Shown: positions 12,778 through 43,209 of the stretch, one piece after another
How positions within the stretch are numbered: position 1 is the stretch's first letter
How the letters are laid out: every line of letters starts with the position of its first letter
Assembly: GCA_028023455.1 (NCBI GenBank)
Contig: JAQFVV010000002.1
Location: 30,380,001-30,444,000 of the forward strand
Direction: 5' to 3'
Source of the DNA: Epiperipatus broadwayi
Taxonomy: Eukaryota; Animalia; Onychophora
Length of the DNA: 64,000 bases
Translations under genes and position numbers: made by a program
The notes under the pieces: generated by a model
Database searches by the model: none
What the model was told of the DNA's origin: nothing
What the model saw: only the letters and a program-made list of their open reading frames with translations

Positions 12778-12834
12778 TACTAAACCATGCGGACATTCTA
12801 TTAACGATTTCAATTCACTGAGAGCTGCATCAGC
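12778..12834 (-). CDS. WDR26: WDR26 next coding exon, 57 bp
   Basis: The minus strand reads cttttgttttag|GCT GAT...TTA GTA|gtaagt and translates to ADAALSELKSLIECPHGLV, matching human AENDLNELKPLVHSPHAIV, which directly follows DWDK. Phase 0/0 is compatible with the upstream exon, and a ctaat branch-like motif lies upstream. Confidence 0.9.
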
Positions 12835-15035
12835 CTAAAACAAAAGATGAAATTAACATTTCCATAAATTAGGTTAATTATTTTGGTAATTATATAGTAA
12901 GATACATTTTAAATGCATTTACCTCTTTCCCTCACATCTCAGAATATATTTAAAAAAGCACAGAAAATGTTTATAGAAATATGAAATAAATTTAAAAATA
13001 ATTAATTTTAATTTGCAAACAATCTAATCATTACATAAAATATTGAATACACAAACATATATCAGCATATACTGCCTTCTAATATGATTTTATTCTAATT
13101 ATTTTGAAATAAGATCGGGGTGGGGGTGAGACTAACAATAGATTACATGAAATATTGAATAAACACACATGGGGAGGGGGTAACCAAATACTGAACACAC
13201 ACACACACGTATACAAACATACACTACATACAACTGTTCTAATTACTTTGAAATAAAATGGGGGGGGGGTAATATATTACATGAAATATTGAATGCTCAT
13301 ACATATACAACCGTATACTGCACACAACAATGATTTTATTATAATAATTTTAAAATAAGATTAGAAAAAAATGACACACACATCAGAAAATCAAAGAATA
13401 AATCCTTGTAATGCAATGAATGAAAGTTAGATATGGTGAATGAACGATGGAAAATTACAACTGATGATGATGAGTGGTATGTTCTGCTGCCTAGCAATGC
13501 CAATCTGCATTTGGACAGAAAAACGAATATATAGCGAAAGTAAATTTGAAATAGGTCTAAAACTTTAACAAAATATAATTATAGAATAGAAAAATCATTG
13601 GTAGAATCTACTGTTTGTATAGAGGAAAAGTCATAGTGATTTCTTGAATTTAAACCCACTACATTGGTAGGTATAGATTGGTAAGCAACCATACGAATAA
13701 ATCACATAGTAAATGCAGTTGCAGAGACAAGAACATAAGGAGCTGAAATTAGAATTTTCTTTGTTTTCTTCTTTTAAAGCCACAAAGAAGAATTTAAAAA
13801 TTGCCTTTCAATTAACTACAAACTTTTGCAGAACCCTTATTCAAAATCACATATGCACACATATATATTGACAAAAAAAAAAAAAGACTACAGATAAAGA
13901 CCAACGAATAAGATGGGTAATTTGATTATTATTTTGACTATGAATGATATCTAAGGTTCCATGTTCATCTTTCAATATCAGCATAGTATTTCTTCAGAAC
14001 AAGAATAACTGATATTTCAAAATAAAGCCTAAATGTAAGCATATCTATGCAGTGTTAATAGTGCTGTTAAATTGTAAATTAAATAATAAAGAGAAAACAA
14101 AAGAAAACGAAATTATATTACAATATATTGATAGGAACCATGATGTGAAATTTCTTTCAAATTTCGTTTTGATTTTTAAATTGATCAGATTAATAGATGA
14201 CTGGAAAAAGAGAAAAGGATACAAGAATGTTGTCAAGCAGAAACCTATTTCCTTTTGACATGGCTAAGATTGGAAAAGATATTTGTAAGAGATGTCAGAG
14301 AAATGCACAAAGGATTCGTTTTTAAAAAGGTTATATAATATGTGGTAAAACCGATCCATTTATAGAAAATATAGTTTTCTCACTCTCTTTTTTGTCTTTC
14401 CATTGATTAATTGGAAATGCAACAGTCTTTTAACATTTTTAAAAGTTAATTTTAGACTTCTTTAAAATAATTAATATGGCCCTGAAGAAAATATAACTGT
14501 GATGTATGTGATGTGTATCATCAAAATAATGATTAGGATAGTTTTCAAAATTCCTTACACCTACTCAGTCTCTATATACATAGTTCTGTGTCTCTCTGTA
14601 CACATACACACAAAATATCTGATATATTTATGGTGATAATACACCCTAATTATATTTAAATCCTAAAAATCTTGAATGTAAATTCAAATTTCTTGTATTT
14701 TTTTTTTTTTTAAAACTAACTAGCAATTTGTAAAAACAATTACATAATTAAAAATCTTCTAATGCTAGCATAAAGTAAATTATAGTATTTCATAAGTGCT
14801 AATAAGATTATTAAAAAGAAATGGATTTAAAGTGAATAATTTATACATTAATGATCTCACTTCTAGATACTTAAGATTGGCTCATATAAATGCATGTGAG
14901 TTTGAAAACAAGATGGTCATTCTTATTTTCTCAGTCTTTTCTTTTATCTTGTCACTGGGGTGAGAGTAGCCCCTACAATAAATCGCCGTTTAATATTATA
15001 GCAGTTTAATATTATCGCATGACGCTAGTAAGGAG

Positions 15036-15932
15036 TGATAGAGGTCCCCAAACTTTTTTGTCCTGTGGACCTCTTTCCAAATAATTTTTTCGCCATAGAC
15101 CCCCTTTTTTTGTCCTGTGGACCCTTTTTAGTGAGAAACTGGTTTTTTTTATATAAAAACTTTGACTACCCCCCCCCTACAGGTCATGAACTTGTTTACA
15201 GTTTTAAATCTTACATTTTTACATTGCTTTATTAAATCTTAGTAAAGACAAAAGCCCCAGGTGAGTAATTGATAAATAGTTCTGATCCAGCGATTTTGTC
15301 TTTAACTTATTTTTAAATTTATTTTTAAAATTTCTACTCTTGGTTCCCAGGTGCGAGTCAGGATGATTTCCAAGAAACAAATCTTTTTTTTTTTTAAAGA
15401 GAGTTTTAAGTTTTGTTCTTTTATATGTGTAAATACAGACACTTCTGGAATTGAGATTTTATACGCGAATACAAGCAACTTTATAAACTAAATTTCTAAT
15501 AACTTAGAAATGAAATAATTTAGAAGAGTTGCAATGTTTATAAAATCTACATTACAGTTTTCTTCGCATATATATGTAGGTGCGCTTCTACACACACAAC
15601 AACGTTTACACAATTTACTTAAATTATTATTTACAGATATTATTAGCTAATGTAGGTAATATATAAATGCACGCACATACATGCTATTATACCTTATTAT
15701 CCAATAATTTATGTTTAATTTCAACTAATATACTTAAAAGTTTACAAAACGTCTGAAATAATGATTTCGGTGGGTGGCCCCCCAAATTTTTGTCGCTGAC
15801 ACGGACCCCCTGAAAGTGACAATCGACCCCTAATGATTTCGGTGGATGGATCCCATTTACATCTCATGGACCACCTGAAAGAGGTAATCGACCCTTGGAG
15901 GTCTATATTGATTACTTTGAAAAACACTTCTA
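15036..15932. mobile_element. Probable hAT-type non-autonomous element with subterminal repeats
   Basis: Left end GAGGTCCCCAAACTTTTT, right end CTTTGAAAAACACT. Repeated tttgtcctgtggacc and atgatttcggtgg/atcgaccc motifs lie near the ends. Boundaries are approximate and no TSD was confirmed. Confidence 0.45.
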
Positions 15933-16579
15933 TATAAATGAAATCATTTCTAGTAATCGACGTTTTATTTCTATTACAAAAAAGCAACCATTGTCCATCA
16001 TACGCATTCACTTCTTTGATGCACTTCTTTGATGTTCATCACAATTAATTGCAATAATAAACCTTTTTAAAAATAGAACATCAAAACAAGTATTTCTTAT
16101 CTAGTACTCATTAATATGTTGGAATCCGTTGATTGTGGCTCAAATCTGCCACTTTCGAAGATTAAACTTCTTATGAATTCTCAAGCAATGGCCCATTTGA
16201 TAATTTGCTTACAATTTTCCAGTCCACTTAAACCAGCTTAAAATTATCATTTCAAATCAAAAACATTTTGGAAGTAATCCTTTACTCCAATGTATCCTTT
16301 CTTATTTAGATAATAACAAAATGGAAGAAAGATTAACTAATATTGAACTCACTATCAAACTTAATCCACCCACAGCTCTGATATGATCCACTCTAAATAA
16401 ATACATTAATGATTATTACTAATCATTTATTAAACTAGAGATCATTCCTAGCAGATATAAACCTTAAATATCAATTAAAGATTAATATCTGTTTTTAATT
16501 AAACACACACATATGGATTAATTCAACTTCATTCCTCTTTTTCCATGTGTAACATCTTTTATAAATGTACTTAATAAAC

Positions 16580-16710
16580 TCTCCACTCTGCCACACCTTC
16601 TTAAAACACATGAATAAAGATATCTTAAAAGACAAATGATTCCCAAGTTGCATTTCATACTGAACCAACACTCATTAGTTGGTTCAGGTCACAATCTCTC
16701 ACATATGTCT
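16580..16710 (-). mobile_element. Family B HHR repeat, decayed copy
   Basis: The minus strand reads CCAA-CUAAUGA-GUGU-UGGUUCA-GUAU-GAAA-UGCAAC-UUGG, i.e. a G5A change and a stem III deletion. The flank matches 24240-24450. Confidence 0.7.
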
Positions 16711-16765
16711 TTATCATATGTTCAATATTTATTAATAGTAAATTGTGTTTTGATTTAAAACCCTT

Positions 16766-17047
16766 GGCAGGATGGCTCAGTTGGCTAGAGCCTTACCTTA
16801 AAATTCAATACTCAAGAATCTAAGGGTCCACGTCCAAACCCCATGCTAGTACTGTCACTGATCAGGCCAGCAACACCTGAAGAAGAAGGGAGAATAATAC
16901 CTCTCGAAACATTGGACATATACTAACCTGTTTGATGTGCTATTATTAACAGCTTATGGTATTTGGAATATTTAAATAAAGTTAAATTTCTCTAAAGACA
17001 TTCAATACTTATATTAGATGATGGAAATAGTCCAATATAAAAACACA
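16766..17047 (+). mobile_element. tRNA-derived SINE with HHR/Penelope-like tail, copy 1
   Basis: Colinear with 52607-52890. A box TGGCTCAGTTGG, decayed B box, and CACCTGAAGA...CGAAAC. Confidence 0.8.
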
Positions 17048-17049
17048 AC

Positions 17050-17322
17050 TACATGATTACCATTTCCTATGCTTACACAAGCTGTTACAACAGAGAAACA
17101 AACTCCCCATACAGTAGTACTACCCAGTGCAAGCCTTAATAATCAATGCATCCAGCATCTCCAGATTAGTGCTCTCAGATCCAAGGCTCCTCACTGATGA
17201 AAGCCACAAGCTAGAGTCAGGATATTGGACGAATAGGCACTTGATAGATTTTAAATATAACCTCCTTGCACCCATTAATTACTAAGGCTTGCACTAGGTG
17301 GCACTATTATGGAGATTTTGCT
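17050..17322. mobile_element. Family A inverted doublet (partial minus arm 17050-17157, plus arm 17160-17322)
   Basis: ctccccatacagtagtactacccagtgcaagccttaataatcaatg is inverted relative to cattaattactaaggcttgcactaggtggcactattatggag. The plus-arm HHR has CTGATGA at 17194 but a 5-nt deletion in GAAAC/stem III. Confidence 0.8.
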
Positions 17323-18214
17323 ATTATTATTATTTGGATTTCCAAGTGTATACTGATAATCTCTAACTAATCAATTACTAAACCAGATTATCCCTAACCA
17401 GATATACATTTTAAATCTTAGTTAAAGATTAATGTATCTGTTTTTAATTAAATATGAACAATTTGTTAAAATTTATTACTATACAGTTTTCTGTAGAATT
17501 TTCCCACTCATCTCTTTTTAATTTATTAATAATTAATTATACAAACTTTTCTTGATATTATCGAAATAACTTCAATACCAAGATGTTGTTTTATATCTTT
17601 ATGACTTTTATTTTCTTTTATAGCATTTCTTACTATTATTGCAATCACATTTTCTTATCATTAATTCTTCCACATCAGAGAAGAGAATTTCAGATCTTCC
17701 ATTCTTCTGAGTTTACACCTCCGACAATAACAAAATGTAAATTTTAATTTTCTTTTTAACACTTGATTTAACAAATGGCTTTATTCAGTTAAAATTTCCA
17801 AGTATTACTTCAAGTACTTTAATTATAAATTCCTTCATTTTAACATGGATAGTCTCTCACCCAACTTACTTAAATTCACCTTCTCATTCATAAATATCAT
17901 ATATATGGATCATTTTTCAAACTTCACAATACTTTCCCCATAAGCAATTATAATGTCTTTTTTTTTTAAAAAAAAAAAGAAGACAAAAATAATGATGAAT
18001 ATATAAATATCACTATATAGATGGATTTAATTTTTTATTTCCTACAAACTAATCAATTATGGAGTAAAAAAATCTCCAACATTCGCAACAAATTAAATAC
18101 ACATATTATATAATTCAACATGTAACAAAATATTAAAAATAAACACATTTTCCTTTTTCTTTTTTGATTTAACTATACGACTAAACTAAATATGGAAAAA
18201 TCAACTTAATTGAA

Positions 18215-18500
18215 ATATCATCATCAATAGTGTTCTGTCCAATGGACTGGTCCAGTGAGTAGTCGCATCATCAATTCACCCATTTTCCCACTCCATTCTC
18301 TCTTCTTTGCCCAACTCTTCAATTCAATGTAACTCTTTCCATCTCTTATATCATCCAATAATGTCAATTTTTTCCAACCTTTCTTCTTGTTTCCTCTCAC
18401 CATTTCCTCCAAACCATTTTTCATCAAACTATTCTTTCTTTTTAATATACTCCATTGAAAGTAAGCCTCTTTCATAAGCTTTTCAATGCATTCCTATAAT
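18215..18500 (-). mobile_element. RTE-like LINE 3' end of a second family
   Basis: ORF 18224-18475 ends ...LLDDIRDGKSYIELKSWAKKREW...GPVHWTEHY*, followed by a (tga)n tail. Confidence 0.6.
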
Positions 18501-19449
18501 TTGGAAACTTCTACTATTTACACAAAATTATGAAAATGAATATGAATTTTTCATACATTTATTATCTTAACACAAGTTATACTTTAATTTTATTAAATAT
18601 TTTAAAATTTAATCTTTAATATACTCACATAAAAGCAAACGTAATAAAATAAATAAATCAATATAATATACATATTTAAAAAATAAAAACAGTTCGATAA
18701 ATAATGAGTTTTATTTTTCTTAGTCCAACAATTCTACTTTTATTCACGATTTTGAAAATAACAACTGAATAACTAAGATTTCTGTAGTTGATCTTTATAA
18801 AAAAAAGACTAAATCTAATTGACCTTAAAAATAAAAATGGATTTAGGAAGGGGAGGGGGATCAATAAACATTTGATTTGATTATTATTGTTTTCGGGGAT
18901 ATTTAATAAAATTTAAAAATCAATAAATATAATACAGTAAAATTCAAGCAATATGTCAAAATTTAAAAAATGAAATGATAACATAATGTTTGTTTATTTG
19001 AGAAAGATTATTTATAATTACAATATATATATAACTGCAATAAGTTTTACAAAAACTAGTAATCCAAAAATGCATAAAGCTAAACTGGTCATAACAGAAA
19101 TTATTTCTACCAAAACAAAGTTTAAACAATCCAGCCAATCAAATTGCCATTACTATATAAACCAACTTATATCAAAATTGAAAACCTTAATAACAGTGAT
19201 TTGTTTGGCTGTATTGCTTGAACATTGTTTGGGAGTAATTAATTTACTGTGTATATATATAAATAAGTATATATGACGTAAATTTTCAGTGAATAATTAA
19301 TTAATACATGAATGATAATAATTTACAATAATTCAATTATAAATCATGAGTTATACAGTAAGAGATAGAAAAAACATTTAATTATCTGTCTAAATGGCAA
19401 AACAGGTTGAAGATTTTATGTGTGTGATGATATTTGTTTAAATAAAAGG

Positions 19450-19773
19450 AAATAGAGGGGTTTGAGCCTTGGATTTTCAGTCTACATTCATGTGAAAAAA
19501 GATAAATGATCCCCAATATACATATTACATGCAGAACTCGCACTCATCAGTTGGGCCAGGTCATAATCCCCCACACATATATACAATCAGTGCTCGTCTT
19601 ATATGTGTGGGAGATTATGATCTGGTCCAACTGATGAGTGCTAGTTCTGCATGAAATATGTATATTGGGGATCATTTATATTTTTCACATGTGTGTGGGC
19701 ATGTGTATCAGTTATTTGTGATGGAGTGGAGGATGAATATGGACTAAAAATCTTAGTTCAAATCCCTCTATTT
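19450..19773. mobile_element. Family B palindromic doublet (arms 19450-19581 and 19600-19773)
   Basis: The arms are near-perfect reverse complements around an 18-bp spacer, with a ~40-bp extra segment in the right arm. Each arm carries an HHR motif reading outward. Confidence 0.9.
19617..19675 (+). ncRNA. Type I hammerhead ribozyme motif (family B), predicted cleavage after A19664
   Basis: AUGAUCU-GGU-CCAA-CUGAUGA-GUGC(UAGUUCU)GCAU-GAAA-U(AUGU)A-U-A^UUGG-GGAUCAU. All core nucleotides and three stems are present. Confidence 0.85.
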
Positions 19774-20176
19774 ATTTACAATAAACATTCAGTATACTGA
19801 ATGCATAGGTTAATTAAATAAAAGTAACATTTCTAAACATTCACAAATGTATTATATAAAAAGAAGGCTTTTGAAAGTTAAGAAATAACGCCATTTTAAT
19901 AAAATACATCCTTAATGAAATGTAATCAAATTGCTTAATGTTTAAGTTTTTCTTTAATTAGAGTAAAATAAAACAATAATTAATGATTAAAAAATTAGGC
20001 AAAAGTTATTAGAAATAATGGTATTGATACTATAAACACACATAGCCTGCTTTTACTGAATTTTTGCACACCATGTAAACACTATTAGATAAAAATCTCT
20101 ATAAAAAAACACAAATATACGAGGTGTGACAATTTAACTTCCGGAATGGCTGTGTGGTGTCACCCATGACCTAAAT

Positions 20177-22800
20177 CAGTGGTCTTCAACTTTTTCACAC
20201 CTGCGGACTAGCAAAAATAAGGATAAGATTTCGCGGACCGGCAGAAGTCTACAGATAAATTTTCTTAAAGATTTAAACTGCTTAGCCTTAGATGAGCATA
20301 ATTGTTATAACTGGCCAAAACAACACCCTAATTATTGTGCATTGTAATGGTGTTGCTTACCTTCACATGCTGAACACTCTTTCTGGAATTGCACAGTCAT
20401 ATTACTACAGAAAACAGTACGTTCTCATTAATGTGCCCCTGCATTGCATATTATTTCATTGTTAAAACATGCAAGAATAAAATGTTATTCACCTGAATGT
20501 TGGGAAATATCACAGCTAGTGTAATTACATGACAATGATTAAGATAAATGTAATACTTATATTTAATGTTAAATATACAAGATGAAGTTATAATCTATAA
20601 TATTAATAAGCCAATAAGCTAATACACATGCACTTTGCAGATGTCACTATATAAATGAATACTCCCACTTTTTCAAACACAAGGTAAAGTCTTTAAGAAA
20701 ATATAGAATGAATCACCTATATTTTCGACCCAACCGTATATGTATGGGCAAATCTGAAGTGTTTGAAATGAAGAGCGTGAAGTTATTAATTGATCACTTT
20801 AAATTACTTTTTTACTACGTAAATGAATGACGCCTATGAAATTTCTAGAATTTACGATACGTCATTCTTATAATTAAACATATGTAAACAAGACATTTAA
20901 ACACTTCAGATTTGCCCAGACATATACGGTTGGGTCGAAAATATAGGTGATTCATTCTATATTTTCTTAAAGACGTTATCTTGTGTTTGGAAAACTGGAG
21001 TATTCATTTATATAGTGACATCTGCAAAGCGCATGTGTATTAGCTTATTGGCTTATTAATATTATAGATTATAAAAAAAAACATTGCGCTATATAAAAAA
21101 ATTAATGTCTTGCTTACATATGTTTAATTATAAGAATGACGTATCGTAAATTCTAGAAATTTCATTGGCGTCATTAATTTACGTAGTAAAAAAGTAATTT
21201 AAAGTGATCAATTAATAACTTCATGCTCTTCATTTCAAACACTTCAGATTTGCCCATACATATACGGTTGGGTCGAAAATATAGGTGATTCATTCTATAT
21301 TTTCTTAAAGACTTTATCTTATGTTTGAAAAAGTGGCAGTATTCATTTATATAGTGACATCTGCAAAGTGCATGTGTATTAGCTTATTGGCTTATTAATA
21401 TTATAGATTATAAAAAAAAAACATCGCACTATATAAAAAAATAAATGTCTTGTTTACATATGTTTAATTATAAGAATGACGTATCGTAAATTCTAGAAAT
21501 TTCATTGGCGTCATTCATTTACGTAGTAAAAAGATAATTTAAAGTGATCAATTAATAACTTCACGCTCTTCTTTTCAAACACTTCAGATTTGCCCATACA
21601 TATATGGTTGGGTCGAAAATATAGGTGATCCATTCCCATATTTTCTTAAAGACTTTATCCTGTGTTTGAAAAAGTGGGAGTATTCATTTATATAGTGATA
21701 TCTGCAAAGCACATGTGTATTAGCTTACTGGCTTATTAATATTATAGATTATAAAAAAAAAAAACATTGCGCTATATAAAAAAATAAATGTCTTGTTTAA
21801 GATGAAGTTATATATATATGGAGTTTGTATAATATAAAACTATTTTTTTAATTTTGAATTTTTTTAGAAAAATAATAAAAAAATTTATTCTACCCCCCCC
21901 CCCCATAAACACCTGTGATAACTAGAAAAACAAAATTTATGTATAATTGATTAGATTTTATTTTCGTTCTGTTTCTTTTTTTTTAATTGGGTAAAAATGA
22001 GATTAAAATAACAACAGATTGCATTAGTTGTTTACTCTTGAAGTCACCTGGGGACCCCCTGTAAAGCCACTGGAAACTGAGCTGAAAAGTTGTTTTGGTA
22101 AAGTGTTACATAACTTCATTTGACAAAATTTCGGAACATACCACACACAAAGGCCCTGGTGATGAACAACTATGAAACCAAGTTTTAAATACTCCTTACG
22201 TGTAATTTCTAATAAAATGAGCTTTTTTGTTTTTGTTTTTTCCTGCAACATCCTGAAGTATCAACATATCAGCATCATTTTTTACTGGAATATTATCCTT
22301 GTCTCTTCTTAAGAAGGCCAAAAAAAGTTTTGCTGTTTGACTTTTTTTGTTTCCATTTTGTGAAGTTTACAATTTCAAAAAGAAATGTCACACCCAAAAT
22401 AAAAAGATGATACAAATGCAATAAAACATTTTGCTATATGTGACCAATAAATGAGTTGACGCAATACAGAAATTCCTATTAGGTATAGAAATTGACGTGT
22501 AAGGAGTGGTCCATTGATCATGAGATTGACACTTTGTCTTTTAAAGATTGCATTTTCAGATAAATTCCTTCAATTATTATTTAGTAATTATAGTATTATC
22601 TAATAATTTAAATAAAATTTTGATTTATAATTATTTTTATTTAAGCAGTTGCGATGAAAAAATAAATAAAAATTGTTTATATTAATTAAGAGTTTAAAAT
22701 CTTATTATTTTGTTATTACAAACTTTCCTGCCAGTCTAGCGCAAACCAGCAGAAAATTTCTGCGGACTGGCACCCGTCGGCAGACCAAGGAAGACCAATG
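20177..22800 (-). mobile_element. Internally deleted hAT (Charlie-like) element
   Basis: TIRs CAGTGGTCTTC/GAAGACCAATG with a perfect 8-bp TSD ACCTAAAT (20169-20176, 22801-22808). A minus-strand remnant EYLKLGF...CVVCSEILSNEVM lies near 22110-22200. Confidence 0.85.
20593..21798. repeat. ~338-bp unit array: one inverted unit plus ~2.7 direct units
   Basis: Direct units start at 20899, 21237 and 21577 (periods 338 and 340). 20593-20898 is a reverse-complemented, permuted unit. The array is flanked by the direct repeat AAGATGAAGTTATA (20579-20592, 21799-21812). Confidence 0.9.
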
Positions 22801-23339
22801 ACCTAAATGTATCAAAATCACATGAATATTGGACATTTGTGTTTGAACATGTTTAAGCTAACAAGTGTGTAAGTTTTAAACTGATAAAGCTAGTGGTTAA
22901 TTAGCTCCTTGAGAAGATAATAAATATCTGTGCGTATGCTTTAGTGTAAAAATGGATGATCGAAAATCATAGTACACTCATTGTGAAACTTTGTGACCAA
23001 AAAAAAATTGCCCAACTAGACTATCCTGCCTATTCACCTGACTTAGCTCAATGTAATTTTTGTTTATGTCCAAAATTAAAAACTGTGCTGAAAGGATAAA
23101 TATTTTCTACTATAATTGATATCCAAAAGAATGTGAGACAGCTGCTCAACAGTTATTCCTGAAAATGAGTTCAGGGTGTGCTTTCAGAAATGGAAACGCC
23201 ATTTTAATCAAAATATAAATGCACATGGGACTATTTTGAAGGTGACAGTAGCCACTACACTTTCACATGCAAATTTTATGAAGGTGCATTCTGGTAATTA
23301 AATGGTCAAACATTGTACACTTAAAATAATAACATTTAA

Positions 23340-23655
23340 TTATCATCATCAATTTCAACCATTATCAATCCATTGTGAGATGGTCTCTCTCTGATCTCTA
23401 GTCTCTCTTATCATCCCAGTATACTTCCTTATTTCTCCATCCATCTCACATGTGGTCTTTTTCTAGGTCTTTTATTACAATCTCTTGGAATCTCATTTAA
23501 GATTTCAACTGTCCATCTCTTATCATCTCTTCTAACCATATATCCAACCCAACTCCACTTCAGTATCTTAATTCTTCCAATGATGTCAGTAACACTTGTT
23601 TGTTCTCTCACCCATGTATTTCGTTTTTGATCTCTTCTTGTTATTTCTGAAATCA
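23340..23655 (-). mobile_element. RTE LINE 3' fragment
   Basis: ORF 23429-23656 WVREQTSVTDII...WSWVGYMVRR...RPHVRWM; same family as 9262-9940. Confidence 0.85.
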
Positions 23656-24239
23656 TTGAGTGGTCTGAGAGTACTGAATATAAAAGAAATTTATATTATG
23701 TGATCATTTACAATTGCAGATTGTTGGACAGATCATCCATTAGTACACGTTCCAAAGTGAAAATAATATTTGCATTAAAAAAATGTCTTATTTCATCATT
23801 TACATAATAAAAATTGATGTTCATTTTTTAGGAGTATCTATTATTTGTGCAAAATTTCAGTAATAAAATACTAAAATTGATAATTTGGAACTTCAGGACT
23901 GTCATGTTAATGAAACTGAACTTCTTTTAAGGGATGTGCTATGGATACACATAAATCTACTTTTGGCTTTGCTAAAAAAGCGAACATCATAACTATTTTT
24001 CTATCATATTTCTTAGTGATTTTCATAAAAAAAAGAAAAGTGACTTTGTGCAGGGCAGAATAATAAATTGAATGTGAAGTATCTTAATAAATAAAAATTT
24101 AAAAATAAAGTTCAATGACTAACAGAATGTTTGCTATTTGGTCTCTGTTGGTGTTTTTTTTCTTTTTCTTAATACAATAATTGAAACACACACGCTTATT
24201 ATATACCTGTGTCTATATATGTAATATATAGGGTATATG

Positions 24240-24450
24240 AGCACAGACTTTCACACGACCCACCACTCTCCACACTACCTCATAACACAGATACACAGAC
24301 TTTCACACGACCCACCACTCTCCACACTATCTCATAACACTGATACACTTGAACATATATATGTTGAAAAGATAAATAATCACCAATATACGTATTTCAT
24401 GCTAAACCAGCAATCATCAGTTGGTTCAGATTACCATCTCTAAGCATATA
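24240..24450 (-). mobile_element. Family B HHR repeat with internal 52-bp tandem duplication
   Basis: Homologous to the right arm of 19450-19773. cacagactttcacacgacc... is repeated at 24242 and 24294. Confidence 0.8.
24376..24434 (-). ncRNA. Type I hammerhead ribozyme motif (family B), predicted cleavage between 24387 and 24386
   Basis: The minus strand reads GUAAUC-UGAA-CCAA-CUGAUGA-UUGC(UGGUUUA)GCAU-GAAA-U(ACGU)A-U-A^UUGG-U-GAUUAU. The core is intact; the first stem II pair is U.U. Confidence 0.78.
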
Positions 24451-24819
24451 TGCTATAAGTGCTCAAATATATATTAAGATAGCCAATCCTCATACTTTAA
24501 TGGACAGGCTTCAATCTACTCCACACTCCAACTTTTCAACCGTCCATCCAATTGAAAATCTGAAGATGGAATGCTCAAAGGCCACCCTGAGGCCGAGATT
24601 CTTGTCATACCCATGGATAATACATACATGCCTAAAAACAGTATCACAATCCTAATAAATCCAATAATGACACTTTTATATGATGACAGTGATATTTCAA
24701 CCAGATGGAAAAAGAATTTTGATCGTCTTTTTGGGAAAAATGGATGTTTTTTTTTAGGAATACATAGACTCAAGGTAAGAATGTTCTATTGTTCTAATTT
24801 TTAAAATTAAAGACAATAA

Positions 24820-25000
24820 CTAATGTGGAATATCATTTTATCAGAGACTCAAGAAGCAGTATTGACATGAAATTAATTACCAAATAAATGGAAGAAAGAT
24901 ATTGGACACAAAAGAGTTGGTTAAAAAATGCTTTTATTGATTTAGCCAAGGCATTTGGATCAATTAATTGAATAGGCCCATGACACCATTCGAAAGCTAT
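24820..25000 (+). pseudogene. Decayed non-LTR RT fragment
   Basis: gcttttattgatttagccaaggcatttggatcaatt translates to AFIDLAKAFGSI, an RT motif. Confidence 0.55.
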
Positions 25001-27326
25001 CAAGGTTTATTCATATTTACAGTATTACATGATAGAATGAGACATGGTAGAATGAAAGGAAGTGATGCTATTGTAGGGGTAAAATATGAAGCACCTTAAG
25101 TGGGAATTGATGTTAAAACAAAGATATATATATTCTCCAACATTAATTTTTATGACAGTAGTCTTTGCAAAAGTTTACATGTGGCTTAATGAATAAGGGA
25201 TCAAGATGCCACATAGGTTTGACAGTAGAAGTTTTAATTTGTATTTCTTAAAGCAAAAACAAAAACATTTTTGGGGGGATTGTTAATTTACAGTAAGCTG
25301 ATGGTTGTACTATTTTTGCTAGTTCAAAAAACAATCTAAAGAATGTATTTAATGTTTTAAACATAACATGTAATTGCTAACTTAGTAGTTAATATTCAAA
25401 AACCTCAAGTTCTTAATAAATCATCAACTCGAACATGTAAGCTAATTTAATTTACGTAACACTTGGACATAAAAAAATTTACTTTTGAAAAAACATCTCA
25501 GAACATGCACCCAAATCCAATTTAGAACTAGTATAAAGGTACCGAAAATTGTGAGCTTGCACAAACATAACTAAAACTCCATGATAAGAAATTTACTTAT
25601 TTTCTAACTGAAGTACAATTATTGCTCTTGTAGTGCTAAATTTAAATGATATCAACAGTTGCCAATATAGCAATCCAGACTTTCAGGATACATGTTTTGA
25701 TATTCAAAATATACTATATTTTAAATTTAATATTATAGAAAGTGCATTTCCATTGATAATACTTTAACTTATATCAGTCCAAATTTGAGTTTCCATAAGG
25801 TTTTTACAAATTGAAAGGCTGTAGATGAAGAACATAGTCCCATATATCTGTCCATGATCACATAGGAAACCCAAAACAATATTGTACTTTATAGCACTTT
25901 ATTGTTGTTTATTACTAATTACAGTGTTATTACAAAAATGTAACTATGTCGAATGATACTTACATATTAAATCTGCTGCCTGTGTGTGATAGCAGAAAGT
26001 CGTAGTTGTGACTTTTTTACTATGATATTCTGCTGCCATAAATACCCCCCCCCCCCCGGAGAAAGAATGCTGTCACAAACACAGGCAGGATAGCATTCTT
26101 TCTCCAGCGGTGGGAGGATTGTGACATGTTTCCTGTGAATGTATGTTTCTTCTTAGGCTGTCATGTGTCAAATTCACAACCAATTAAAAAAAAATTACGT
26201 TTGCAAAGGAAGTAATTCTGCCGTTAATAAAAAATGCTCGGAAAAAAATCAATACATGTGCTTTTAACTGTTGTACAGAACTGAATAGATATAGTATATA
26301 AATTGTGATGAAAAATATGATTACAATACATAAATTCATGTTTGAAATATGATATTTAGTGGAGGGAAAAAATAGATGCTATAGTACAATATTTACATTC
26401 AGTTTTGGTTAGTGTATAATTGAAATACAAACGACAGCTTTCAAGTAGGTGAACAATTCTCACATGTATTCCTATAATATTAAAATCTTGTTAATTTATA
26501 TTAAATCTTTAAAAAAATTTGTTAAAGCAACCAATTAAAAAAAAAAGACGGCTTTTACATAGGCAGAGTACTGCTTGTTCAAATTTATCGCCTTTAATAA
26601 AAATTGAAATAATGAATAATGTCTCCGCAATTCCAAATTAAAGCTATTGCACATGAGTGAGTGATTTAATTCAATCCTGTAAGCCCAACCCATCATAAGG
26701 TTTGAAAATCAGTTATCAAGTTTACTTTATCCTCTATTACTTGTTCATGATGCGTCATATATATCTAGTGATCATTATAATATTTTATTTATCAAAAACG
26801 TATGGCAAAATATCTCTCACTGTCATGAATATTTTAACGGAATGTTTCACAAGTTTTAACATTAGAAGAGTGGAGTGTTTTCTTCATTATAAGATTTATC
26901 ATATAAATTATTTGTTCATCGATTTTATTTCCATTAATATTGAAAAGAAAAAAATACATGTTATAAATAATCTAGAGATGCATAAAAAAAGTATAATTTT
27001 ATTTAATAATTATATAAAACATAAATGTCAAAGTTTTAAAGTCTTTGAATATTATAAAATAAGAATAGTATCTTTGAATATTATAAAACAAGAGTAGTAC
27101 ATGTGCATAAAAAGAGAATGCTTATTAAAAATATCTATTTTGTAAATTTTTTTTAAATATCTATTTTAGAGAAGCATTTCTATGTATGTACATCTAAAAA
27201 TTGTTGACATTTTAAATATGATGTTAAAAGTACATGTACAAAGTTTATTTAAGCAAAAAAAAATTTTGAAGAAATTATTCTTTGTCTAAATTTAATTTAT
27301 CATTAAAATAGACATATCAATTACAG

Positions 27327-27617
27327 CATGGGTCCCCAACCCTATGCTGGCAGACCATTTTACGTGTGCCCGCCGCTATCCAAACACGATAAAAAATTAT
27401 TTATCTGATACAAATAAATTTAATTTTTAAAATTTCTTATAAATTATTGTATTATATTGTAATCAAATTGTAGGGCATACTATACTTTTACAGCGTAAAA
27501 GGGTCTATCATTAACAATGTCCAATTATAAATTTTACATTGAAAAAATAAATGATGCCCACCACCTGGCCAGTATTATAGAATGTGCTCTTAAGTGCAAA
27601 AAGGTTGGGGATCGCTG
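27327..27617. mobile_element. 291-bp hAT MITE
   Basis: TIRs CATGGGTCCCCAACC/GGTTGGGGATCGCTG with an 8-bp TSD aattacag/aactacag. Confidence 0.8.
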
Positions 27618-29556
27618 AACTACAGTATATCTTATATAGGATCATACAGGTATTTCTTACTGCCTGTGGGTAATTTCATTATTTGAAATCTAAATACATT
27701 ATAGTAAAATTGTATACTGTCTTATGTATGTTATATCTCAGAAGAGGCTGAGGTTGGATATTCATTGTGATTGTATTGATTTTATGAAAAAAAAAAATGT
27801 ATAAAATGTTATTTATAAAGCTGATCTAATTCCTTCAATAGTCATAAAGTATCCTACAGATACTGAATTACTACTTATATTATCAGAAAAGAAAAATTCT
27901 ATTTTGATTAATAAAATATATTTCTAGAATTTTATATATAATAGAAATGAGAAATTCTATTTAATTGATATGTGTTTCAGAGTTATATATATGTTGAAAG
28001 CATAACATGGATTGCTTACAATGCGGTTGAGATGCAGTATGATCGATAATGTGAAAGAAGTGCGACTAATATCACTTAATTTGCAATTTTTATGCGAACA
28101 AGTTTTATCTATTTCCACATAAGCTGAAACTATTTTATACTTTAGTAATCATTCACATTTAATAAAATAATAAAGAAATTTCTTAAGGTTATTCTCAATA
28201 ATATGTGCGCTCCGTGTCTTATTCTATTTTATTAATAAAAATCTTTGGCAAATGTACGGTTTCTTACTATAAGCACTAATTAAGAGTAATTCAATCTATG
28301 TTTTAAAACTAAGGTTAGTACTTTTAAATACAAAGTTGAGCAATGATTTATCTCAGGGTTGTATAAAATAAAAAAATGGCATAGATATCAAGTGTGTTTA
28401 TGAATTCTACGATACAATAATACAAAAGGGATTTTATGTACACTATCCTATCCAATACTTTTATATTTCAAATAGCATTAATACAATAATGATGTATTTA
28501 ATCCAGATAGATTTTACGTGTAAGTTAATATCTCAAATATGACCTTTATATCGTGAATATGCAATGATGATGTTTCTTTAATAATGACAAAAGATAAATA
28601 TTGAAAAATTAACAATTACTTAATTACCCAATATAAAATAAATGATAGAACAATAACAACAACAACAACAAATTATATAACAACTAATAAATATTACTCT
28701 TTATTTCCTAAATCTAATTTGAACTTGGGATATGAAAAACGTGTTACGAGATAGTGTCATGAAGATACTAACATTAAATAAGAATAAGTTATTTACTATT
28801 TCAAAATAATCTTCAATTTAAATACTGGAGGATAATAATTATCATCATCATTAAAGATGTTTTACAGTCGTTCTTAATTAGTTTGTTTCACTAATTAATC
28901 AATCATTAATCAACCTCAATAATGTTTTCACTCCGTTAAGAAAAGCAAGTACAAATCATGGCTTAGCAGACCTAGATGATATTTACCACATTTGGCTTAT
29001 TTATTTTGCTTCAAGATTCTTTACAGGATTCAATTGCAGGCTTAAACGTTAGGAGTGTTACTCTACTGATAAATTATAACTAGATCATTAGAATGCCTTA
29101 TTATATACTATATAACAATGAAAAATTAACACTAACATATGAGTGATGCATAAAATATTCCTTACAGATCTACGTATCTAAATAAGGCTGATTAACTCCA
29201 TTTAATTTTGAGGTTGAAATTTAAGCACTTATAAAACATATTTGCCATATAGCATAGATTTATATAAATTTAATAATTACTTATGTTTGTACAACCTAAA
29301 CCTAAGGTAAACCCCATTTAATACCATTCAATCTCAACAATAACAATATTAAATAAAAATATTATCTGTAATCTGAGCATAGTAATATCTGGAAAGACTT
29401 GATTCCATTAATAACAACAATAATATTAATTAAATAAGAAAGAAGCAATTATAAAAAAATGCATTAAATAATCCATCCAGTTTATTGAACAATTAATTTC
29501 ATTTTTGTAATGTCATCTTTTCTGGAAACAACATAAAGATTAGTAAATTTTACTTA

Positions 29557-30740
29557 CCATACTTGATAATCCAGAATAATATATAATTAAAACATTAATC
29601 CATTTTTAAGACTGCTTATAACTCGGACATTTATCATATTTCACATTGGCTTTGATAATCCACAATTCAGGAGTGGCATTTAAATATTTAGCTTCAGAAT
29701 CCATTATCCATTGAATGGTATTTAAATATTCAGCACTGATAATCCATAATGCAATTTCTTAAGGACAGGATACAAATTCGTACTTTATTCCAGCTTATTC
29801 CATGCAGCGATTTAATTTATTTGAACAGATGTTATGATTTTAACCAAAAATTAGCATTCCTTACTTCTTTGAGATATAAAATTAATTTATTCATCTATAG
29901 ATCTTTAATCCATGATACCAGTAATTCTGATCACATCTCTGATAAAGAAAATAGTTTACTAACCTTAACAAAATGACTTTCATTATTTTTTGAACCAAAA
30001 TTCGTTTCTCTAAGCAACAAGTTTATATGGAGACATATTTGAATTGAAAAAATTATTGTTTAAAGTTTTTCCTTACATAATTAAGGATGAGACAATTCAC
30101 AACATTGAGACGAATATACATCCTGTCTTGTAGTGAAGAAAATAATTATTTTTATAATAATTTGGAAAATAAGCATCGATAATTTGTTTGAAATTAAGAA
30201 ATATATTTTTCCAAAAATATATCAGCTAATTACCATTACTTTCAATTGAAGCAATCCAGCAATTTATTGTTGAAATAGTGAGACAGCATACTACAGGTCA
30301 ATTTGTCCATTTTCCCACTAACAGTTGATTGTAATAAATGAGATTTCTTGAAATAAAGAATTAATGAATCAATTAATGATAGTTTTTTGATTTATCCATT
30401 GTTGTTCATCTTTCTCCTAGAACAATGAGAAGTCATTTGTCTAGAAAAGGCAACTGTCAAGCTGTTTTTCTAGCCAGTCACCATAGGGTAGATGACAAAC
30501 AAAACGGCTAAAAATTTGAACCTGTTTAGGTCCTGATTGCAATGAAAATTTGTAAAAGACTGTCTGGATTTTCCTAACTTCAGCTTTTATACCAGTTATC
30601 ACATGATGTCTGGATTACAGAATATTCTCCGTCATGCATTGGGGTTTCTTCATTTGTCATGAAATATTGGAAGAGGTCATCATGGTTTCTACCAGGCAAA
30701 ATGGTAGATGCTAAGATTTTTGAATGAAGGTAGTAAAACT
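29557..30740 (-). pseudogene. Decayed exon-like coding remnant, possibly a transposon-borne Ulp1/C48 protease
   Basis: Bounded by acceptor-like (...tttctaaag) and donor-like (tg|gtaagt) motifs. Broken frames give SLQDRMYIRLNVVN...CDQNYWY/GIMD...FVSCP*EIALWIISAEYL, in the order of Ulp1 motifs, with many stops. Confidence 0.4.
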
Positions 30741-31444
30741 TTAGAAACACCGTTCAAAAATGAAGAATAAAAAAGAAAATAATAATTTTGGTCTTTTTCA
30801 ATGGCTTCACTTTTTTTTCTGGGTTTTAAAATAACATTATAAATATTTATTTAAAACAAATAAATCATAAACTTTAAAGTTCTGATAATTATTCCATAAA
30901 CTTTAAAGTTCTCAGATATTGATTCAATTAATTTTAAAGTGAAATTGGCCCGTTAATAAATAATTTCTTGTTAAATAAATATTCTAGCAACTAAATCAAT
31001 GTGCTAAATAAAAATCTAAACATGTATGCTTACACATGCACACAAAATACAAGAACTGTTTATTCTACACAAATAAAATATTTTAGGATTGTAATGTTGG
31101 ATTTATAATTCTATTCTATATTTCTATTTTTGAATTATTTGTTTTTGTACATTGTGAGCTCTTCTTTTGTTTTATTCAGTTGACAACTTTATTCCTTAAT
31201 AAAAATAATGAAATATGAGCAGATATACTTTTTTTATATAAATATAGAAGTCTATAAAAAAAAATCTGCCTAGAAAGCTATTCAAAAATAAACATTAGTA
31301 TGAGAGACTATTTAAATGTGATAATGATTATATTCTATGTTATACAACTAATGAGAGAGATGAATTTTCTTTCTTATTACATTGCCAAATCCATTTAAGA
31401 TAATATTAATATCATTTATGTTCTTTATTATTTTTACAGTGCTT

Positions 31445-32222
31445 TTTGCGACCTACTATTGGATGGTTTCGATTGCCCCAACCATCTTCTTCAGAACTAT
31501 AACAGACACTATACCAATACATGATTACAAATATAAATATGCATGAACATATAATTTTACATTTTATATATATTCGATCTTATAATCATTATTTATATAC
31601 CCACATATATCTTTATATACCTCTCTACATAATTATTACCTTTTATATATTATACATTTTATCTTTTTTGATATTCTATATTTATCAATCAATATCATAT
31701 ATATATTATTTTTATTTCATTTATTTTTTATTTTATTCTTATTAATTTTTAATATTTAATTCTAACATTATATATTCATATTTTACATTATTATTTATTA
31801 TATTAACATTCAATATGTATAATTTTCTTTAACTTATAATATTATTTTTAAATATATAAAATTTATTCATTATTCCATCTTATTGGATGATCACGTTAGC
31901 ATGTTTAAGGCATATCTGTTGAAGGCATTAGCTTTCACATTATTACAATATTATTTTTTTAACATATTTTTTATACCTATCTTCTAAGTATTTTCAAATT
32001 TTAACTGCTATCAATTCAAACTTTTACATTATACAGTTATATTTAGTGACTCCCTCTTTCTATTTTTTTTCTAATTAAATCTATTTTTTTTTATATATCA
32101 AAATTTTTTTTGCAGCCTAAATCTCTATTTAATACTGGCTGAATATATATAAGGTATAAAAAAAATGTTAAAATATAATATTATAGATTAAAGAAAATTA
32201 CACATACTGAATGTTAATATAA

Positions 32223-32276
<54 letters not shown>

Positions 32277-32510
32277 TAAAATATAAAAATATGAATATAT
32301 AATGTTTGAATTAAATATTTAAAAAAATTAATAAGAATAAAATAAAAAATGAAATAAAAATAATATATATATATGATCATAGGAAGTATTGATTGATAAA
32401 TATAGAATATAAAAAAGGTTAAGATATATAATATATAAAAAGGTAATAATTATATAGAGGTATATAAAGATATGTGGGTATATAAATAATGATTATAAGA
32501 TAGAATATAT
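31445..32510. repeat. Family C inverted doublet (arms ~31568-31850 and ~32170-32510) with an HHR-like motif at 31445-31500 (-) and (AAT)n at 32225-32275
   Basis: The arms are reverse complements (e.g. ataatcattatttatatacccacata). The minus strand reads AUAGUU-CUGAAGA-A-GAUGG..CAAUC-GAAAC. Confidence 0.8.
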
Positions 32511-35359
32511 GTATTGTGCCAGTCATATACATTAATTTTATTTAGCTATTATTTAAACTATAAAATAAATGAAGTTGTCTGTGTATATATTTTTTTTAAC
32601 CACACACACACACAAGAATATTAACTTCTCAAAGTGTAAATTGATGCATAATGTTATATATGCGTACAATATTTTTGATTCATTTTATTTTTTTTATAAA
32701 TGTAAATATATTACTTGTATAATTTTATATTATAGTTTATTGATTTTTTTTTCTGTAAAAAGTTGTTTACGTGTTGGAACATGTTTTAAAAGAAATAAAA
32801 ATAGATAAAATAATTAGAAAGTAATTATAGATGTTCTAACACGTGATATATTTTTTTTAATTAGCAGATTTTCGATTAATCCATTAAGAAAAATCAGATG
32901 GCTATTGTGCCACCAAATATAAAAATGCACTAATGTATTTTTAGCCATTCTGCTTTGTACTCTTATTTTTACTAACAAAAAAGTGCAGAGAAATCGGACA
33001 CCAAGAGAGATAGAAAATCTTGTTAATTTTAACTCTATAGCAAAATATTTTTTTTTCTCTTTGTATGTAAAGTTGAAACTGATGTTATCAATTAGCGGTC
33101 TGAGTCGCCCAGATTAAGTTAAATTAAATATTGTAAAATTAATTAAAACTAACATTCTGTAAGAAATAAACTATGTAAGTTATTTTTAAATCAATTAGCC
33201 ACCAAGATATAAGCTTGAGGCAATGATTTGAAGGGGGGTAAACAAATTGACCATGTAATGGAGTTGCTATATATACTGTTCACCCGATGCTGGGCGATCA
33301 TTATCATTATTCTCTTATTCTTTCTCTGCTTGTCTGGTTCGTTTTTCCAGAGAGACTTCAAGAAATAATTCTTTATTCTCAGTTGTTTTTCCAGAGACTT
33401 CAAGAGACTATTTATTTAATGGTATGCTTCTTCCCAGAGAGATTTGTAGATATATAATCAGAGAGATTGAAAAAACAAGCTAAGCTATTTTAGAAGATAT
33501 TTTGCATGATCATTGCAGGCCGACTAGTATTATATTTTAGTCTCTGCCAATATTTCATGACTTCCAACTAAAGCTGAGGTTACTTATGCAGAAGACCATA
33601 GCTATGGGGTAAAGACTTAAAATAATAACACTGCATAAATATTTAAATAAAAATTGGAAATGTTTTATCTTGATTGACGTTTTCACTACCAGTTGAGAGT
33701 CCTTAGCAGCCGCATGAGTTATACTTTCAATATTTCATTTTAAAGATTAAATCTTTATTCTGCATTATCAATAAAATGTATGTTATTTATTAGAAATACA
33801 AGTTTGCAAAGAAACATTCTCAAAAATGATATTTCAATTTTGCAAATATAAAAAAAAAATTAACTGAATACTTAATCAGAACAATAGCATTTTTTTTTAT
33901 CAGATGATTGCCACATTGATGATAAAAATATTTAATAAATTAAATATTTGTTATTTGAACTCCATTTCTAAAATCCTAAAGAATTACTGTTAAGTCATCA
34001 TAAAACAACAAAATTTTGTTCTAAAATTTAAAATTGCACTTATAATTATTAGAAAATAACAAAAAAACAACTTCTAAAATGTTTGTAAAACTATTTTTTC
34101 AAAACAATTTTTTTACCATGAGCACATTTTTCTTGACTTTTCTTAAAAACAAACATTTTCTAAGAAAATTTAAATGTAATCATGAATATTTTTATTTTAA
34201 AATAAATATTTTACCAATATTTTGCAAAAAAAAAAAAAACCCTAAATATATAAACTACGGAAAATGTAGGAATTTTTCTTTTTGAAATGAAACCAAAGAA
34301 ATGACACTTTCAAAAGTTTTGCGTTCTCAGGGCCTAAAAACAAATAATCTTCTAATCAACATCTTGTTGGCTCATTTTTTTAAAACTAACACATCAATAT
34401 ATGAGTTTATTTTAATTCCAGTTTCTGCCACCAAAATGTAAAACTGCCAAATGAACACTACAGATAGGAGCAAGAGTGTGAAGATAAAACCAAAAGCAAT
34501 CACAAACGCTGCTGGTAGTGAGACCATTAAAATAACTTCATTACAAAAAAAAAAACAGTAACAATAATGTACGTTTTTGTGTAGTTTAAATTAACAATGC
34601 ATTTCTATTCTTTTTTTTCTCTACAGTTTCGATGGTCTAACAAACTTCTTACAGCTGAAACAGTAAGAAAAAACAGTATACAGTAACAATAATATACACC
34701 GTTAATTTAAAAGTGAAAGAAAAAGTAAATTATTTTATTATGCATAAAAGCAATGCAAAAAGAGTAAAACAACATCATACAAAAAAGACACTTATAGCAA
34801 TATTTGCAGCTATAGTTACAAGACGTACAATCTTAAGATTATTATTATTATAGTCTAAAAATTTAACAATATTCATCATTAGTCTTAACATTAAAGAGAA
34901 AAACAATTCATTACATAGCAACAAAGACATTTCCTGCTTAATACTGAGAATCGATGCGATACTGTTTTTACTCATATCAATTGAAAAAATTAAATATACA
35001 ATTTCTATTTAAACAAAACGATTTATTGCAAAATTTAGCAGTCAACTTTCATTCAATCAGCATTGATTAAAATGTCTTTGAATTATAGTTATATAGGACG
35101 ATCACCGATTCTTTTTTTTTTCCTAAATGAATTGAACACAAAAAAATTTCTTGACATTATTTTTTAAACTTATCCAAATTACTTGATTTTAAGGGACCCA
35201 TTAAATATTTAATACTTTTTTGGCTTCCATAATTAAAACCATTATACAATGAATATGGGTGATAGTTGTATGTACGAATTAATTTAAATTAAATACTCAA
35301 TCTACATAAGACTGAAATAAACAACTGTTTTATGTAGATTGATTATTTAATTTATATAT

Positions 35360-37301
35360 TGTAACCCGCCCCCTGCTGGCTTCCGTACCGAAAGCCCAGT
35401 AAAGTCACGTCCTTTATATCTGGACGCTTTTGCCGTATTCCTACGGTGACATTCTCATGTTTTGGTTGATGGTTCACTTCTATGAACCTGCTGTGTTCTT
35501 GCGTCTGGGGGATTACATAATGTTCTGTGAAGATAATTTCAAACACATATACACGTACGCTTTATTTATTTTATACGTAAATTCGGATTGAATCCAAGTA
35601 GTAGGCGCCAGGAGAACTTTTATAAGAGTCTGCCATGTATGTGCATAAGCTCACTCAACTATACCACAAAACATGCCTGTGCATCACTCCAGTCGGAAGC
35701 AAGAAACGAACACAGCCTATATTGCCTTTCAAATTACATCGTATATGTGATCTTTCACTCACGATCAATCAGACTTATCATATTAGGGCCCGCCCTATAT
35801 CCCACAGAATAAATTAATCAACACTTAATATTAATCTAAGAAAGCATAATAAACATAAATATAATCAAATCCCAACAACAAAAATATCAAATGCATTCAT
35901 TCATATACAAACAAACTTGATCGCTCCAGCACTCATTCCCTATTACATAAATTTATGTTGAAATTCCAAGCAATTAATAACAAAAAATACTAGTTAAATA
36001 AATGTTTTATTTTAATCTGTTTAATAACAATTCATGCAGGTATATGACCGGCAAGCCGAGATAATTTAAATATAGCTTTCAAGGTGACTTCGCACATATT
36101 TTAAAGAATGTTAATCTGTAGGCAAACTTATTTGGTTAGGTTCTCTAATCGTTCATTAATGGTCATGAGTAACTTTATCATTTTAGCTTAATGTTTTTAA
36201 TAGTTCTTGGTTTTTAAAGTTATTTTACTTTGGTGCATAAATAAATACGATAATTTAAAGGTAGCTACCTGTGGAACGTAGAAAGACTGTAAGAGGGATC
36301 CTGAGCGATGATTTCTTCTTTAACGAAGCATTCTGGCAATTTGCAAGGTCTCAAAAGCGTGTGTGGTCCTTATGTGAAGTTTCTCCGGTGTTACGAGCAT
36401 CCTAGGGGCAATCAGCTGAGCTGGACGTGGAGGTCCGGCGGTCAAGCCGCGAATTTTAGGTTCAGCAACGCATCTCCGTTATATTTCTACACGAAAGTTA
36501 GATTTTATTTCTTCTAATTCTAATTTAATAATAATCCATAATCTAGCGCTGTCCGGCCTTTTTGATCTCTTCCTTCCCGCCCTCACACCTTGAATTTTTT
36601 TCACCCAATCACTCCCATGCACCTGTGAGTCCCTTCATCTTATAAGTCCATCGAGTATTAACTCAATTCAGTGATTTCTGGGATCGTTTGTACCACTTTG
36701 AAATTTAACTCAATTTGACCATTTTTTCAGGTATTGTTTCGCTGGAGACAGAAGTCTGAGTTGTACAATAGCAGTGTACACTTTTTCTCACCTCTGTTTC
36801 TAAATTCGGCTTATTTTATCTAGGCGTACCAACGCATATCCTGCCTATTGTTTCAATTTCTCTAATTTTACATTTACTAATTACTCCCATTTAAAATAAT
36901 TTTAGATCGCTTGGAATTTCAGAACATATTGCAAATTAATTAATTCATTTTCCCTTTTTGTTCCAAATGATTTAATAAAAATGTCAAACTTGCGTTCAAT
37001 CATTCATCTTTATTTAATTAAAAAAAAAACACAAAAAACTTACAACTAATGATTCCAGATTTATCCTTAAAAAAAAACAAAATAATAAAAAAACTCTTTT
37101 ACTTTTTTATTTCAATAAATTTGACAGGTACTCCTATATAGCTGCGATCATGCTTTAGAAACGGCTGTATCTCGTTTATTATTAAAGCAAGACCGCTTTT
37201 TTTAAAAGTTTTGTTCCTGTCATTCATTTCGTCAATTACATATATGTTGATATAACCTCATATGCCTGGGTTCAAATCCCATGTAACGCTATTCCGTTAC
37301 A
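35360..37301. mobile_element. 1.94-kb solo-LTR-like element
   Basis: TGTAAC...GTTACA termini with a perfect ATAT TSD on both sides. It is GC-richer than its flanks and has no ORF of note. Confidence 0.75.
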
Positions 37302-42849: not shown

Positions 42850-43209
42850 AACATCACATGATCACCATTTCATATGCTTACACATGCTGTTAATAAGAGT
42901 ACCAAACTCTCCATACAGTAGTGCCACCAAGTGCAAGCTTTCATAATCAATGGATGCAGAAAAGTTTGTGCATAAACCTACTCATCCAACCTCCCTAGAC
43001 TAGTTTCTAGCTTGTGGCTTACATCTGTGAGGAGTTTTGGATTTGAGAGGCTCCTTACTGATGAAAGCCACAAGCTAGAAGAAACTAGTCTAGGGATGTT
43101 GGTTGAGCAGGCACTAGATAGGGATTTTATGCACAAACCTTCCTGTATCCATTGATTATGAAAGTTTGCATTTGGTGGCATTACTGTATGGAGTTTGGTA
43201 CTCTTATTA
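42850..43209. mobile_element. Family A palindromic doublet (arms 42891-43047 and 43049-43209)
   Basis: taataagagtaccaaactctccatacagtagtgccacc is inverted relative to ggtggcattactgtatggagtttggtactcttatta. HHR motifs point outward. Confidence 0.85.
43052..43096 (+). ncRNA. Family A minimal type I HHR motif with a 3-nt insertion
   Basis: UCCUUA-CUGAUGA-AAGC(CACAA)GCUA-[GAA]-GAAAC-UA-GUC^UAGGGA. Stem I pairs fully; activity is doubtful. Confidence 0.5.

Follow-up and report, generated by a model that had tools for sequence, protein, structure and literature searches.

Genomic context of the motif

We analysed a 64,000-nt stretch of the Epiperipatus broadwayi genome (hereafter the window; G+C content, 27.7%), the minus strand of which carries two exons of a WDR26 homologue. 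The upstream exon, which encodes the CTLH region (57618..57713), was assigned by homology and is followed by a GTAAGT donor that starts at 57617. It matches WD repeat-containing protein 26 (PDB 8qbn chain 7) with an E-value of 5.7e-10, has 203 relatives at E<=0.001 in a representative library, and gives tblastn E-values of 1e-9 to 1e-14. The next exon (12778..12834, minus strand; ADAALSELKSLIECPHGLV) lies between a ttttag acceptor and a GTAAGT donor. In tblastn it gives a weak E-value (~0.2); the piece is in phase and continues the previous exon residue by residue in several WDR26 relatives. A tblastn search with these relatives detected no WDR26 exon in the window besides the two.

The intron derived from the flanking exons is 44,783 nt long (12835..57617, minus strand) and holds all four copies of a hammerhead-bearing repeat, designated as family B. 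The copy studied here has its hammerhead at 24376..24434 on the minus strand. Because the exons at 57713..57618 and 12834..12778 flank it, the motif is intronic and lies on the sense strand, 33.2 kb into the intron and 11,551 nt before the 3' splice site. The first-pass annotation had placed it on the WDR26 sense strand about 11.5 kb upstream of the next exon; the enclosing minus-strand exons bear out the former statement, and the measured distance agrees with the latter, the downstream exon being the one with the weak tblastn E-value.

The intron is packed with transposon debris, including RVT_1, zf-RVT and other fragments. Just upstream of the WDR26 exon, at 61.9-63.1 kb, an LTR-type element has left RNase H-like and integrase fragments. 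A tandem array at 20894-21799 consists of 2.7 copies of a 340-bp unit with 94% matches, and a pattern search found no hammerhead box in it.

Anatomy of the hammerhead motif

The motif is of type I and was recognised by reading the sequence, by a descriptor match, and by a score of 91 bits in the covariance model of its family. Read 5' to 3' on the minus strand, the first strand of helix I consists of GUAAUC (24434-24429), a UGA bulge (24428-24426) and ACCAA (24425-24421), and leads into the CUGAUGA core box (24420-24414). Helix II (24413-24399) comprises the pairs U.U, U-A, G-C, C-G, U-A and G.U, closed by a GUU loop, and is followed by the GAAA core box (24398-24395). Helix III (24395-24388) is formed by A15.1-U16.1 and U15.2-A16.2 around an ACGU loop, with UACGUA at 24394-24389. 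U16.1 and A17 occupy 24388 and 24387, the cut is predicted between 24387 and 24386, where self-cleavage of the hammerhead kind would produce 2',3'-cyclic phosphate and 5'-OH ends, and the second strand of helix I (UUGGU, 24386-24382; GAUUAU, 24381-24376) completes the motif. Helix I thus has 5 + 6 pairs, helix II has five with U.U at its base, and helix III has two.

The invariant core is complete, with its 11 invariant letters distributed over CUGAUGA, GAAA and the UA at 24388-24387, and the three helices meet at it in the right register, helix I being open and helices II and III closed by loops. Helix III sits in a perfect 8-nt palindrome, AUACGUAU, in which the loop CpG is kept. Our reading of the minus strand recovered every element that had been reported earlier, namely CUGAUGA, GAAA, the UACGUA palindrome and AUA^, each at its given position, and likewise the U.U at the first pair of helix II. 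The base of helix II is where the motif departs from its class: G10.1-C11.1 is highly conserved in canonical hammerheads (PMC4209133), and U.U stands there instead.

A hammerhead descriptor matched the window three times, as compared with a mean of 0.14 in 100 first-order Markov simulations, and a looser pattern gave nine overlapping matches against 2.2 expected. These counts bear on the possibility that no ribozyme motif is present, the match being due to chance or to an intronic C/D-box snoRNA. CUGAUGA does contain a C box, an intronic sense location is typical of snoRNAs, and relaxed Rfam scans returned weak SNORD113-like matches (13-17.5 bits, E 0.8-3.7) on stretches of 91-311 nt. However, these scores are far under the gathering score of 36 bits, no D box (CUGA) was seen before the 3' terminal stem, and a sibling copy in the antisense orientation gives the same match; the snoRNA-like matches were rejected on these grounds. 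Against chance stand the descriptor count and the four homologous copies that keep the hammerhead helices in register (see below), and we regard an explanation without a ribozyme motif as almost certainly wrong. The sequence comparisons thus confirm 24376..24434 as a real hammerhead-ribozyme motif, beyond chance.

Family B in the window

When the locus was compared with the window by blastn, three further copies with 76-78% identity were found, and a covariance model built from the four copies and run over the whole window with filters off recovered exactly those four and no others. The homology to these three copies and the 91-bit score uphold the earlier assignment of the motif to family B on the minus strand. 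The family consensus rests on these four sequences, all from the 64-kb window.

The studied copy (24371-24438, minus strand) has an intact core with U.U at 10.1/11.1. The copy at 19613..19680 lies on the plus strand, antisense to WDR26, also has an intact core, carries G10.1.U11.1, scores 93.7 bits, and forms the right arm of a doublet. Its left arm is the copy at 19501..19568 (minus strand, sense; 94 bits), which has G.U at the same pair and a core broken by a change of GAAA to GUAA. The fourth copy (16631..16696, minus strand, sense; 76.7 bits) likewise has G.U, and its core is broken by a change of CUGAUGA to CUAAUGA, with a 2-nt deletion and substitutions in helix III. The core is therefore intact in two of the four copies and broken in the other two, and three of the four are in the sense orientation to WDR26.

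Beyond the hammerhead itself, blastn within the window and alignment delimited a repeat remnant at 24320..24464 (minus strand) that is homologous to the other family B copies. Tandem Repeats Finder and a repeat search revealed a tandem duplication of a 52-nt unit at 24242..24348 (minus strand; 2.1 copies, 96% identity). This duplication lies in the tail of the studied repeat, directly 3' of the hammerhead on the minus strand, and is absent from the sibling copies. The same kinds of search found no tandem unit at the studied locus that would supply a second hammerhead, and the nearest copy on the same strand is 4.8 kb away. The studied copy is thus solitary, and its helix III is left without a tandem partner to lengthen it.

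The four copies also bear on how the motif has changed. U10.1 is private to the studied copy and G is present in the other three, so that the change from G10.1 to U is, on the alignment, a derived one in this copy and the family state is G.U. Across the four sequences, 89% of cells pair in register, as compared with 32-46% when the partner is slid by 1-3 columns. At three helix pairs both sides have changed; in distal helix I, for example, a G-C has become A-U, and the fifth pair of helix I reads A-U, U.G or C-G among the copies. With four sequences, this conservation of helix register gives modest support to a genuine hammerhead family. Where the studied copy has the C of UACGUA, two siblings have U, a difference that would be consistent with CpG decay in these two. 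Variants private to the studied locus are U at 24413, C at 24392 and U at 24382.

The studied copy differs from its siblings at 12-25% of sites. By our arithmetic, about 12 invariant positions would all come through neutral evolution at this divergence with a probability of roughly 3-20%, and an intact core in one copy of four is the outcome expected of neutral decay. Where copies are as numerous as in this genome, some such cases should lie on the sense strand of introns even in the absence of selection.

Exact-pattern scans for family B relatives gave no matches in metagenome contigs (two patterns) or in viral contigs. A search for sequencing runs gave four DNA runs and four possible RNA runs, and the RNA candidates contained only 4-7% of the words sampled from a 6-kb stretch.

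The doublet at 19496-19685 consists of two 5'-truncated family B copies arranged head-to-head, with 86-nt arms that are 93% complementary and separated by 18 nt; within the WDR26 pre-mRNA these arms would pair to give an extended, almost perfect hairpin. Head-to-head pairing of 5'-truncated copies is typical of Penelope-mobilised elements, and the doublet resembles the inverted-copy insertion footprint reported for them. Just upstream of the 16.6-kb copy, the stretch at 16745-16800 (minus strand) contains a string that reads as the reverse complement of a tRNA-like A-box region (GCTCTAGCCAACTGAGCCATCC). A SINE derived from a tRNA may begin here on the plus strand, although ARAGORN found no tRNA upstream of this copy.

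Relation to known hammerhead systems

Judged from its sequence, the motif belongs to a class already known, the canonical metazoan type I hammerheads of retrozymes and Penelope-associated repeats. Like the metazoan non-LTR retrozymes (Cervera and de la Pena 2020, PMC7229834), it has the type I topology and lies in an AT-rich, non-coding repeat context. In both, an internal bulge interrupts helix I after about 5-6 bp, helix II has 4-5 bp, and a palindromic tetraloop closes a helix III of two pairs. [quoted passage not shown] The closest counterpart in detail is the axolotl HHR_Amex2, which begins helix II with a U.U mismatch and closes a 2-bp helix III with a tetraloop; in family B, by contrast, U.U is the private decay of one copy and the consensus is G.U.

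With the Penelope-like hammerheads (Cervera and de la Pena 2014, PMC4209133; bioRxiv 10.64898/2026.07.22.740005), the motif shares palindromic helix III positions implying dimer action. The massive copy numbers and high within-genome sequence variability of these hammerheads may be counted as another likeness, as may the sibling locus at 19.5 kb, a head-to-head 5'-truncated pair. The minimal hammerheads of Penelope-like elements differ in that they lack helix III and loop-loop contacts and keep G10.1-C11.1, whereas in the studied motif helix III has two pairs and helix I contains a bulge. Penelope-like hammerheads are located in repeats on either side of an ORF for a Penelope reverse transcriptase with GIY-YIG. 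Neither a Penelope reverse transcriptase nor a GIY-YIG ORF adjoins the copy: the two flanking ORFs (23432-23695 and 24519-24785) gave no Pfam matches, and the other reverse-transcriptase fragments in the window are of the RVT_1, zf-RVT or rve types and lie kilobases away.

In its placement on the sense strand of a long intron, roughly 10 kb from the next exon, the motif recalls RECK and other amniote intronic hammerheads (PMC6155905) and the HDV-like ribozyme of CPEB3 (PMC10919898). Those ribozymes are single-locus, conserved across orthologues, and cleave fast when measured, whereas the studied motif comes from a dispersed repeat, shares its intron with decayed siblings and has a weakened base of helix II. 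Finally, the hammerhead of newt and salamander satellite 2 (Epstein and Gall 1987; Forster et al. 1988), as cited in PMC6155905, is also of type I, with an unstable helix III and a palindromic loop. According to the same citing source, its monomer has little activity, whereas the tandem dimer is efficient. Satellite 2 forms long tandem arrays there, so that a partner is always present in cis, whereas the studied copy has no partner within its unit.

Database and folding tests

No hammerhead family in Rfam matched the window at the gathering score. Relaxed scans at E<=10 were applied to stretches of 311, 111 and 91 nt; those of 311 and 91 nt at the studied locus gave no hammerhead match, and the better sibling copy gave only a mis-registered 14-bit match to Hammerhead_3. 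The Rfam models may simply not cover a form with a 2-bp helix III.

The minimum free energy of the monomer is unremarkable against shuffles (z = -0.44). The hammerhead fold of the monomer was calculated at -1.1 to -5.2 kcal/mol against a minimum of -10.4, and the double hammerhead at -18.1 kcal/mol against a dimer minimum of -32.1, the latter using a competing hairpin, CUGAACCA/UGGUUUAG. On these models the active shape would be thermodynamically disfavoured, in monomer and dimer alike, a result to which we give little weight because nearest-neighbour models ignore the tertiary contacts of hammerheads.

Cleavage rate and consequences for WDR26

At a Pol II speed of 3.5-4.1 knt/min (PMC10919898), the 11.6 kb to the next exon would take about 3 min. 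Published relatives give widely different rates. The axolotl HHR_Amex2 showed 22% cleavage in 1 h as a monomer and did far better as a tandem dimer, while a coral retrozyme hammerhead with a 2-bp helix III is fast as a monomer, with a kobs of about 0.8 per min (both PMC7229834). By our arithmetic, about 1% of transcripts would be cut in ~3 min at the former rate and about 90% at the latter, so the outcome hinges on the cleavage rate.

At the fast end, the copy would cleave itself within minutes during transcription, cut the intron 11.5 kb before the exon, and lower or tune WDR26 mRNA in the manner of CPEB3. The intronic ribozyme of CPEB3, located 9,931 nt before the exon, tunes that gene (PMC10919898), and by analogy it indicates that regulation by intronic cleavage exists in principle; the geometry is close to the 11,551 nt found here. 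The sense orientation, the intact core, the plausible three-helix fold and the rate of 0.8 per min in coral retrozyme hammerheads of similar architecture also speak for such tuning. Against it, the U.U at 10.1/11.1 is derived, the published analogue with U.U is slow, the active fold is disfavoured, and the copy is part of a repeat family, other members of which have decayed within the same intron. Moreover, as summarised in PMC2995048, introns cut co-transcriptionally by a hammerhead splice as efficiently as intact ones, and only a fast HDV ribozyme aborted splicing (Dye et al. 2006 and Bentley's group). Xenopus introns are depleted of retrozymes (bioRxiv 10.64898/2026.07.22.740005), a pattern that points by analogy to the purging of harmful insertions by purifying selection, not to recruitment or domestication. 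We therefore consider regulatory cleavage on the scale of minutes very unlikely. The route by which it might arise, fast folding in the nascent transcript despite U.U, aided by the bulged helix I and by contacts of the helix II loop, with cleavage within minutes, has a slimmer chance still. If fast cleavage were true, WDR26, which is one of the CTLH E3 ligase subunits, would carry a built-in brake in the form of a hammerhead derived from a transposon, much as in CPEB3, and sense-strand intronic hammerheads could be a widespread layer of gene regulation in the genome of E. broadwayi.

Cleavage could also occur without consequence. The copy might cut at least 10% of the intron RNA, alone or by pairing of its palindromic helix III with abundant family B RNA from other loci. 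The upstream exon would remain tethered to the polymerase all the while, and the intron would be removed in any event. Dimer action is implied by a short, palindromic helix III (PMC4209133), and the perfect 8-nt palindrome together with the intact core would suit dimers; the published results on exon tethering and the very high abundance that retrozyme RNAs can reach in animal tissues (PMC7229834) point the same way. A double hammerhead, however, needs an intermolecular helix I, and the distal helix I of the studied copy has diverged, with A-U for G-C relative to the other copies, and would therefore pair more weakly in trans. We think such harmless cleavage unlikely.

The reading that we favour, with a probability of roughly 75%, is that the WDR26 intron harbours one old, solitary copy of a short retroelement with a hammerhead, and that this copy cleaves slowly or not at all and has no measurable effect on WDR26. 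By this account, the retroelement copy would have been inserted by chance, in the sense orientation, into the transposon-filled 44.8-kb intron. As inferred from the published class, the ribozyme would have served the life cycle of the family by cutting unit-length RNA from longer transcripts. In the studied copy, the 11 invariant core letters survive, while the pair under the core has decayed from the G.U of the family to U.U. With a helix III of only 2 bp, a palindromic loop and no tandem partner, cleavage would probably be weak, so that WDR26 pre-mRNA would be cut not at all or in ~1% of transcripts before the next exon is made, and no measurable effect on WDR26 expression would be expected.

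Several observations count against a decayed copy: the core is fully intact, helix I shows compensatory changes, and the loop CpG of helix III is kept within the palindrome. Should U.U be only a slight handicap in this copy, the majority of transcripts could be cleaved before the polymerase gets to the exon, if the analogy with the coral hammerheads applies. The first-pass annotation had further proposed that self-cleavage could affect the splicing or expression of WDR26. We found no sign of this: the helix II base is U.U, the copy is solitary, Rfam gave no match, and the active fold is disfavoured; on the published side, the U.U analogue cleaves at 22% per hour and introns cut by slow hammerheads were spliced normally, as summarised in PMC2995048. 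Meaningful cutting of WDR26 pre-mRNA, or an effect on WDR26, is thus unsupported and unlikely.

As it stands, the locus matters little, being one more decaying copy of a hammerhead retroelement that is intronic by chance. A wider question worth asking genome-wide is whether intronic hammerheads in the sense orientation with intact cores are costly or regulatory for their host genes; the single WDR26 locus offers no special handle on it.

Other hammerhead-like sequences in the intron

The same WDR26 intron contains a second, unrelated hammerhead-like family, designated as family A, with copies at 43058-43092 (plus strand), 50401-50438 (minus strand) and 50845-50882 (minus strand). Its two sense-strand copies look degenerate, one having a poor helix I and the other C at position 16.1. 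The layout of the family, with CUGAUGA, a short helix II, GAAAC-UAG-UC and a palindromic, minimal helix III, is that of the Penelope minimal type.
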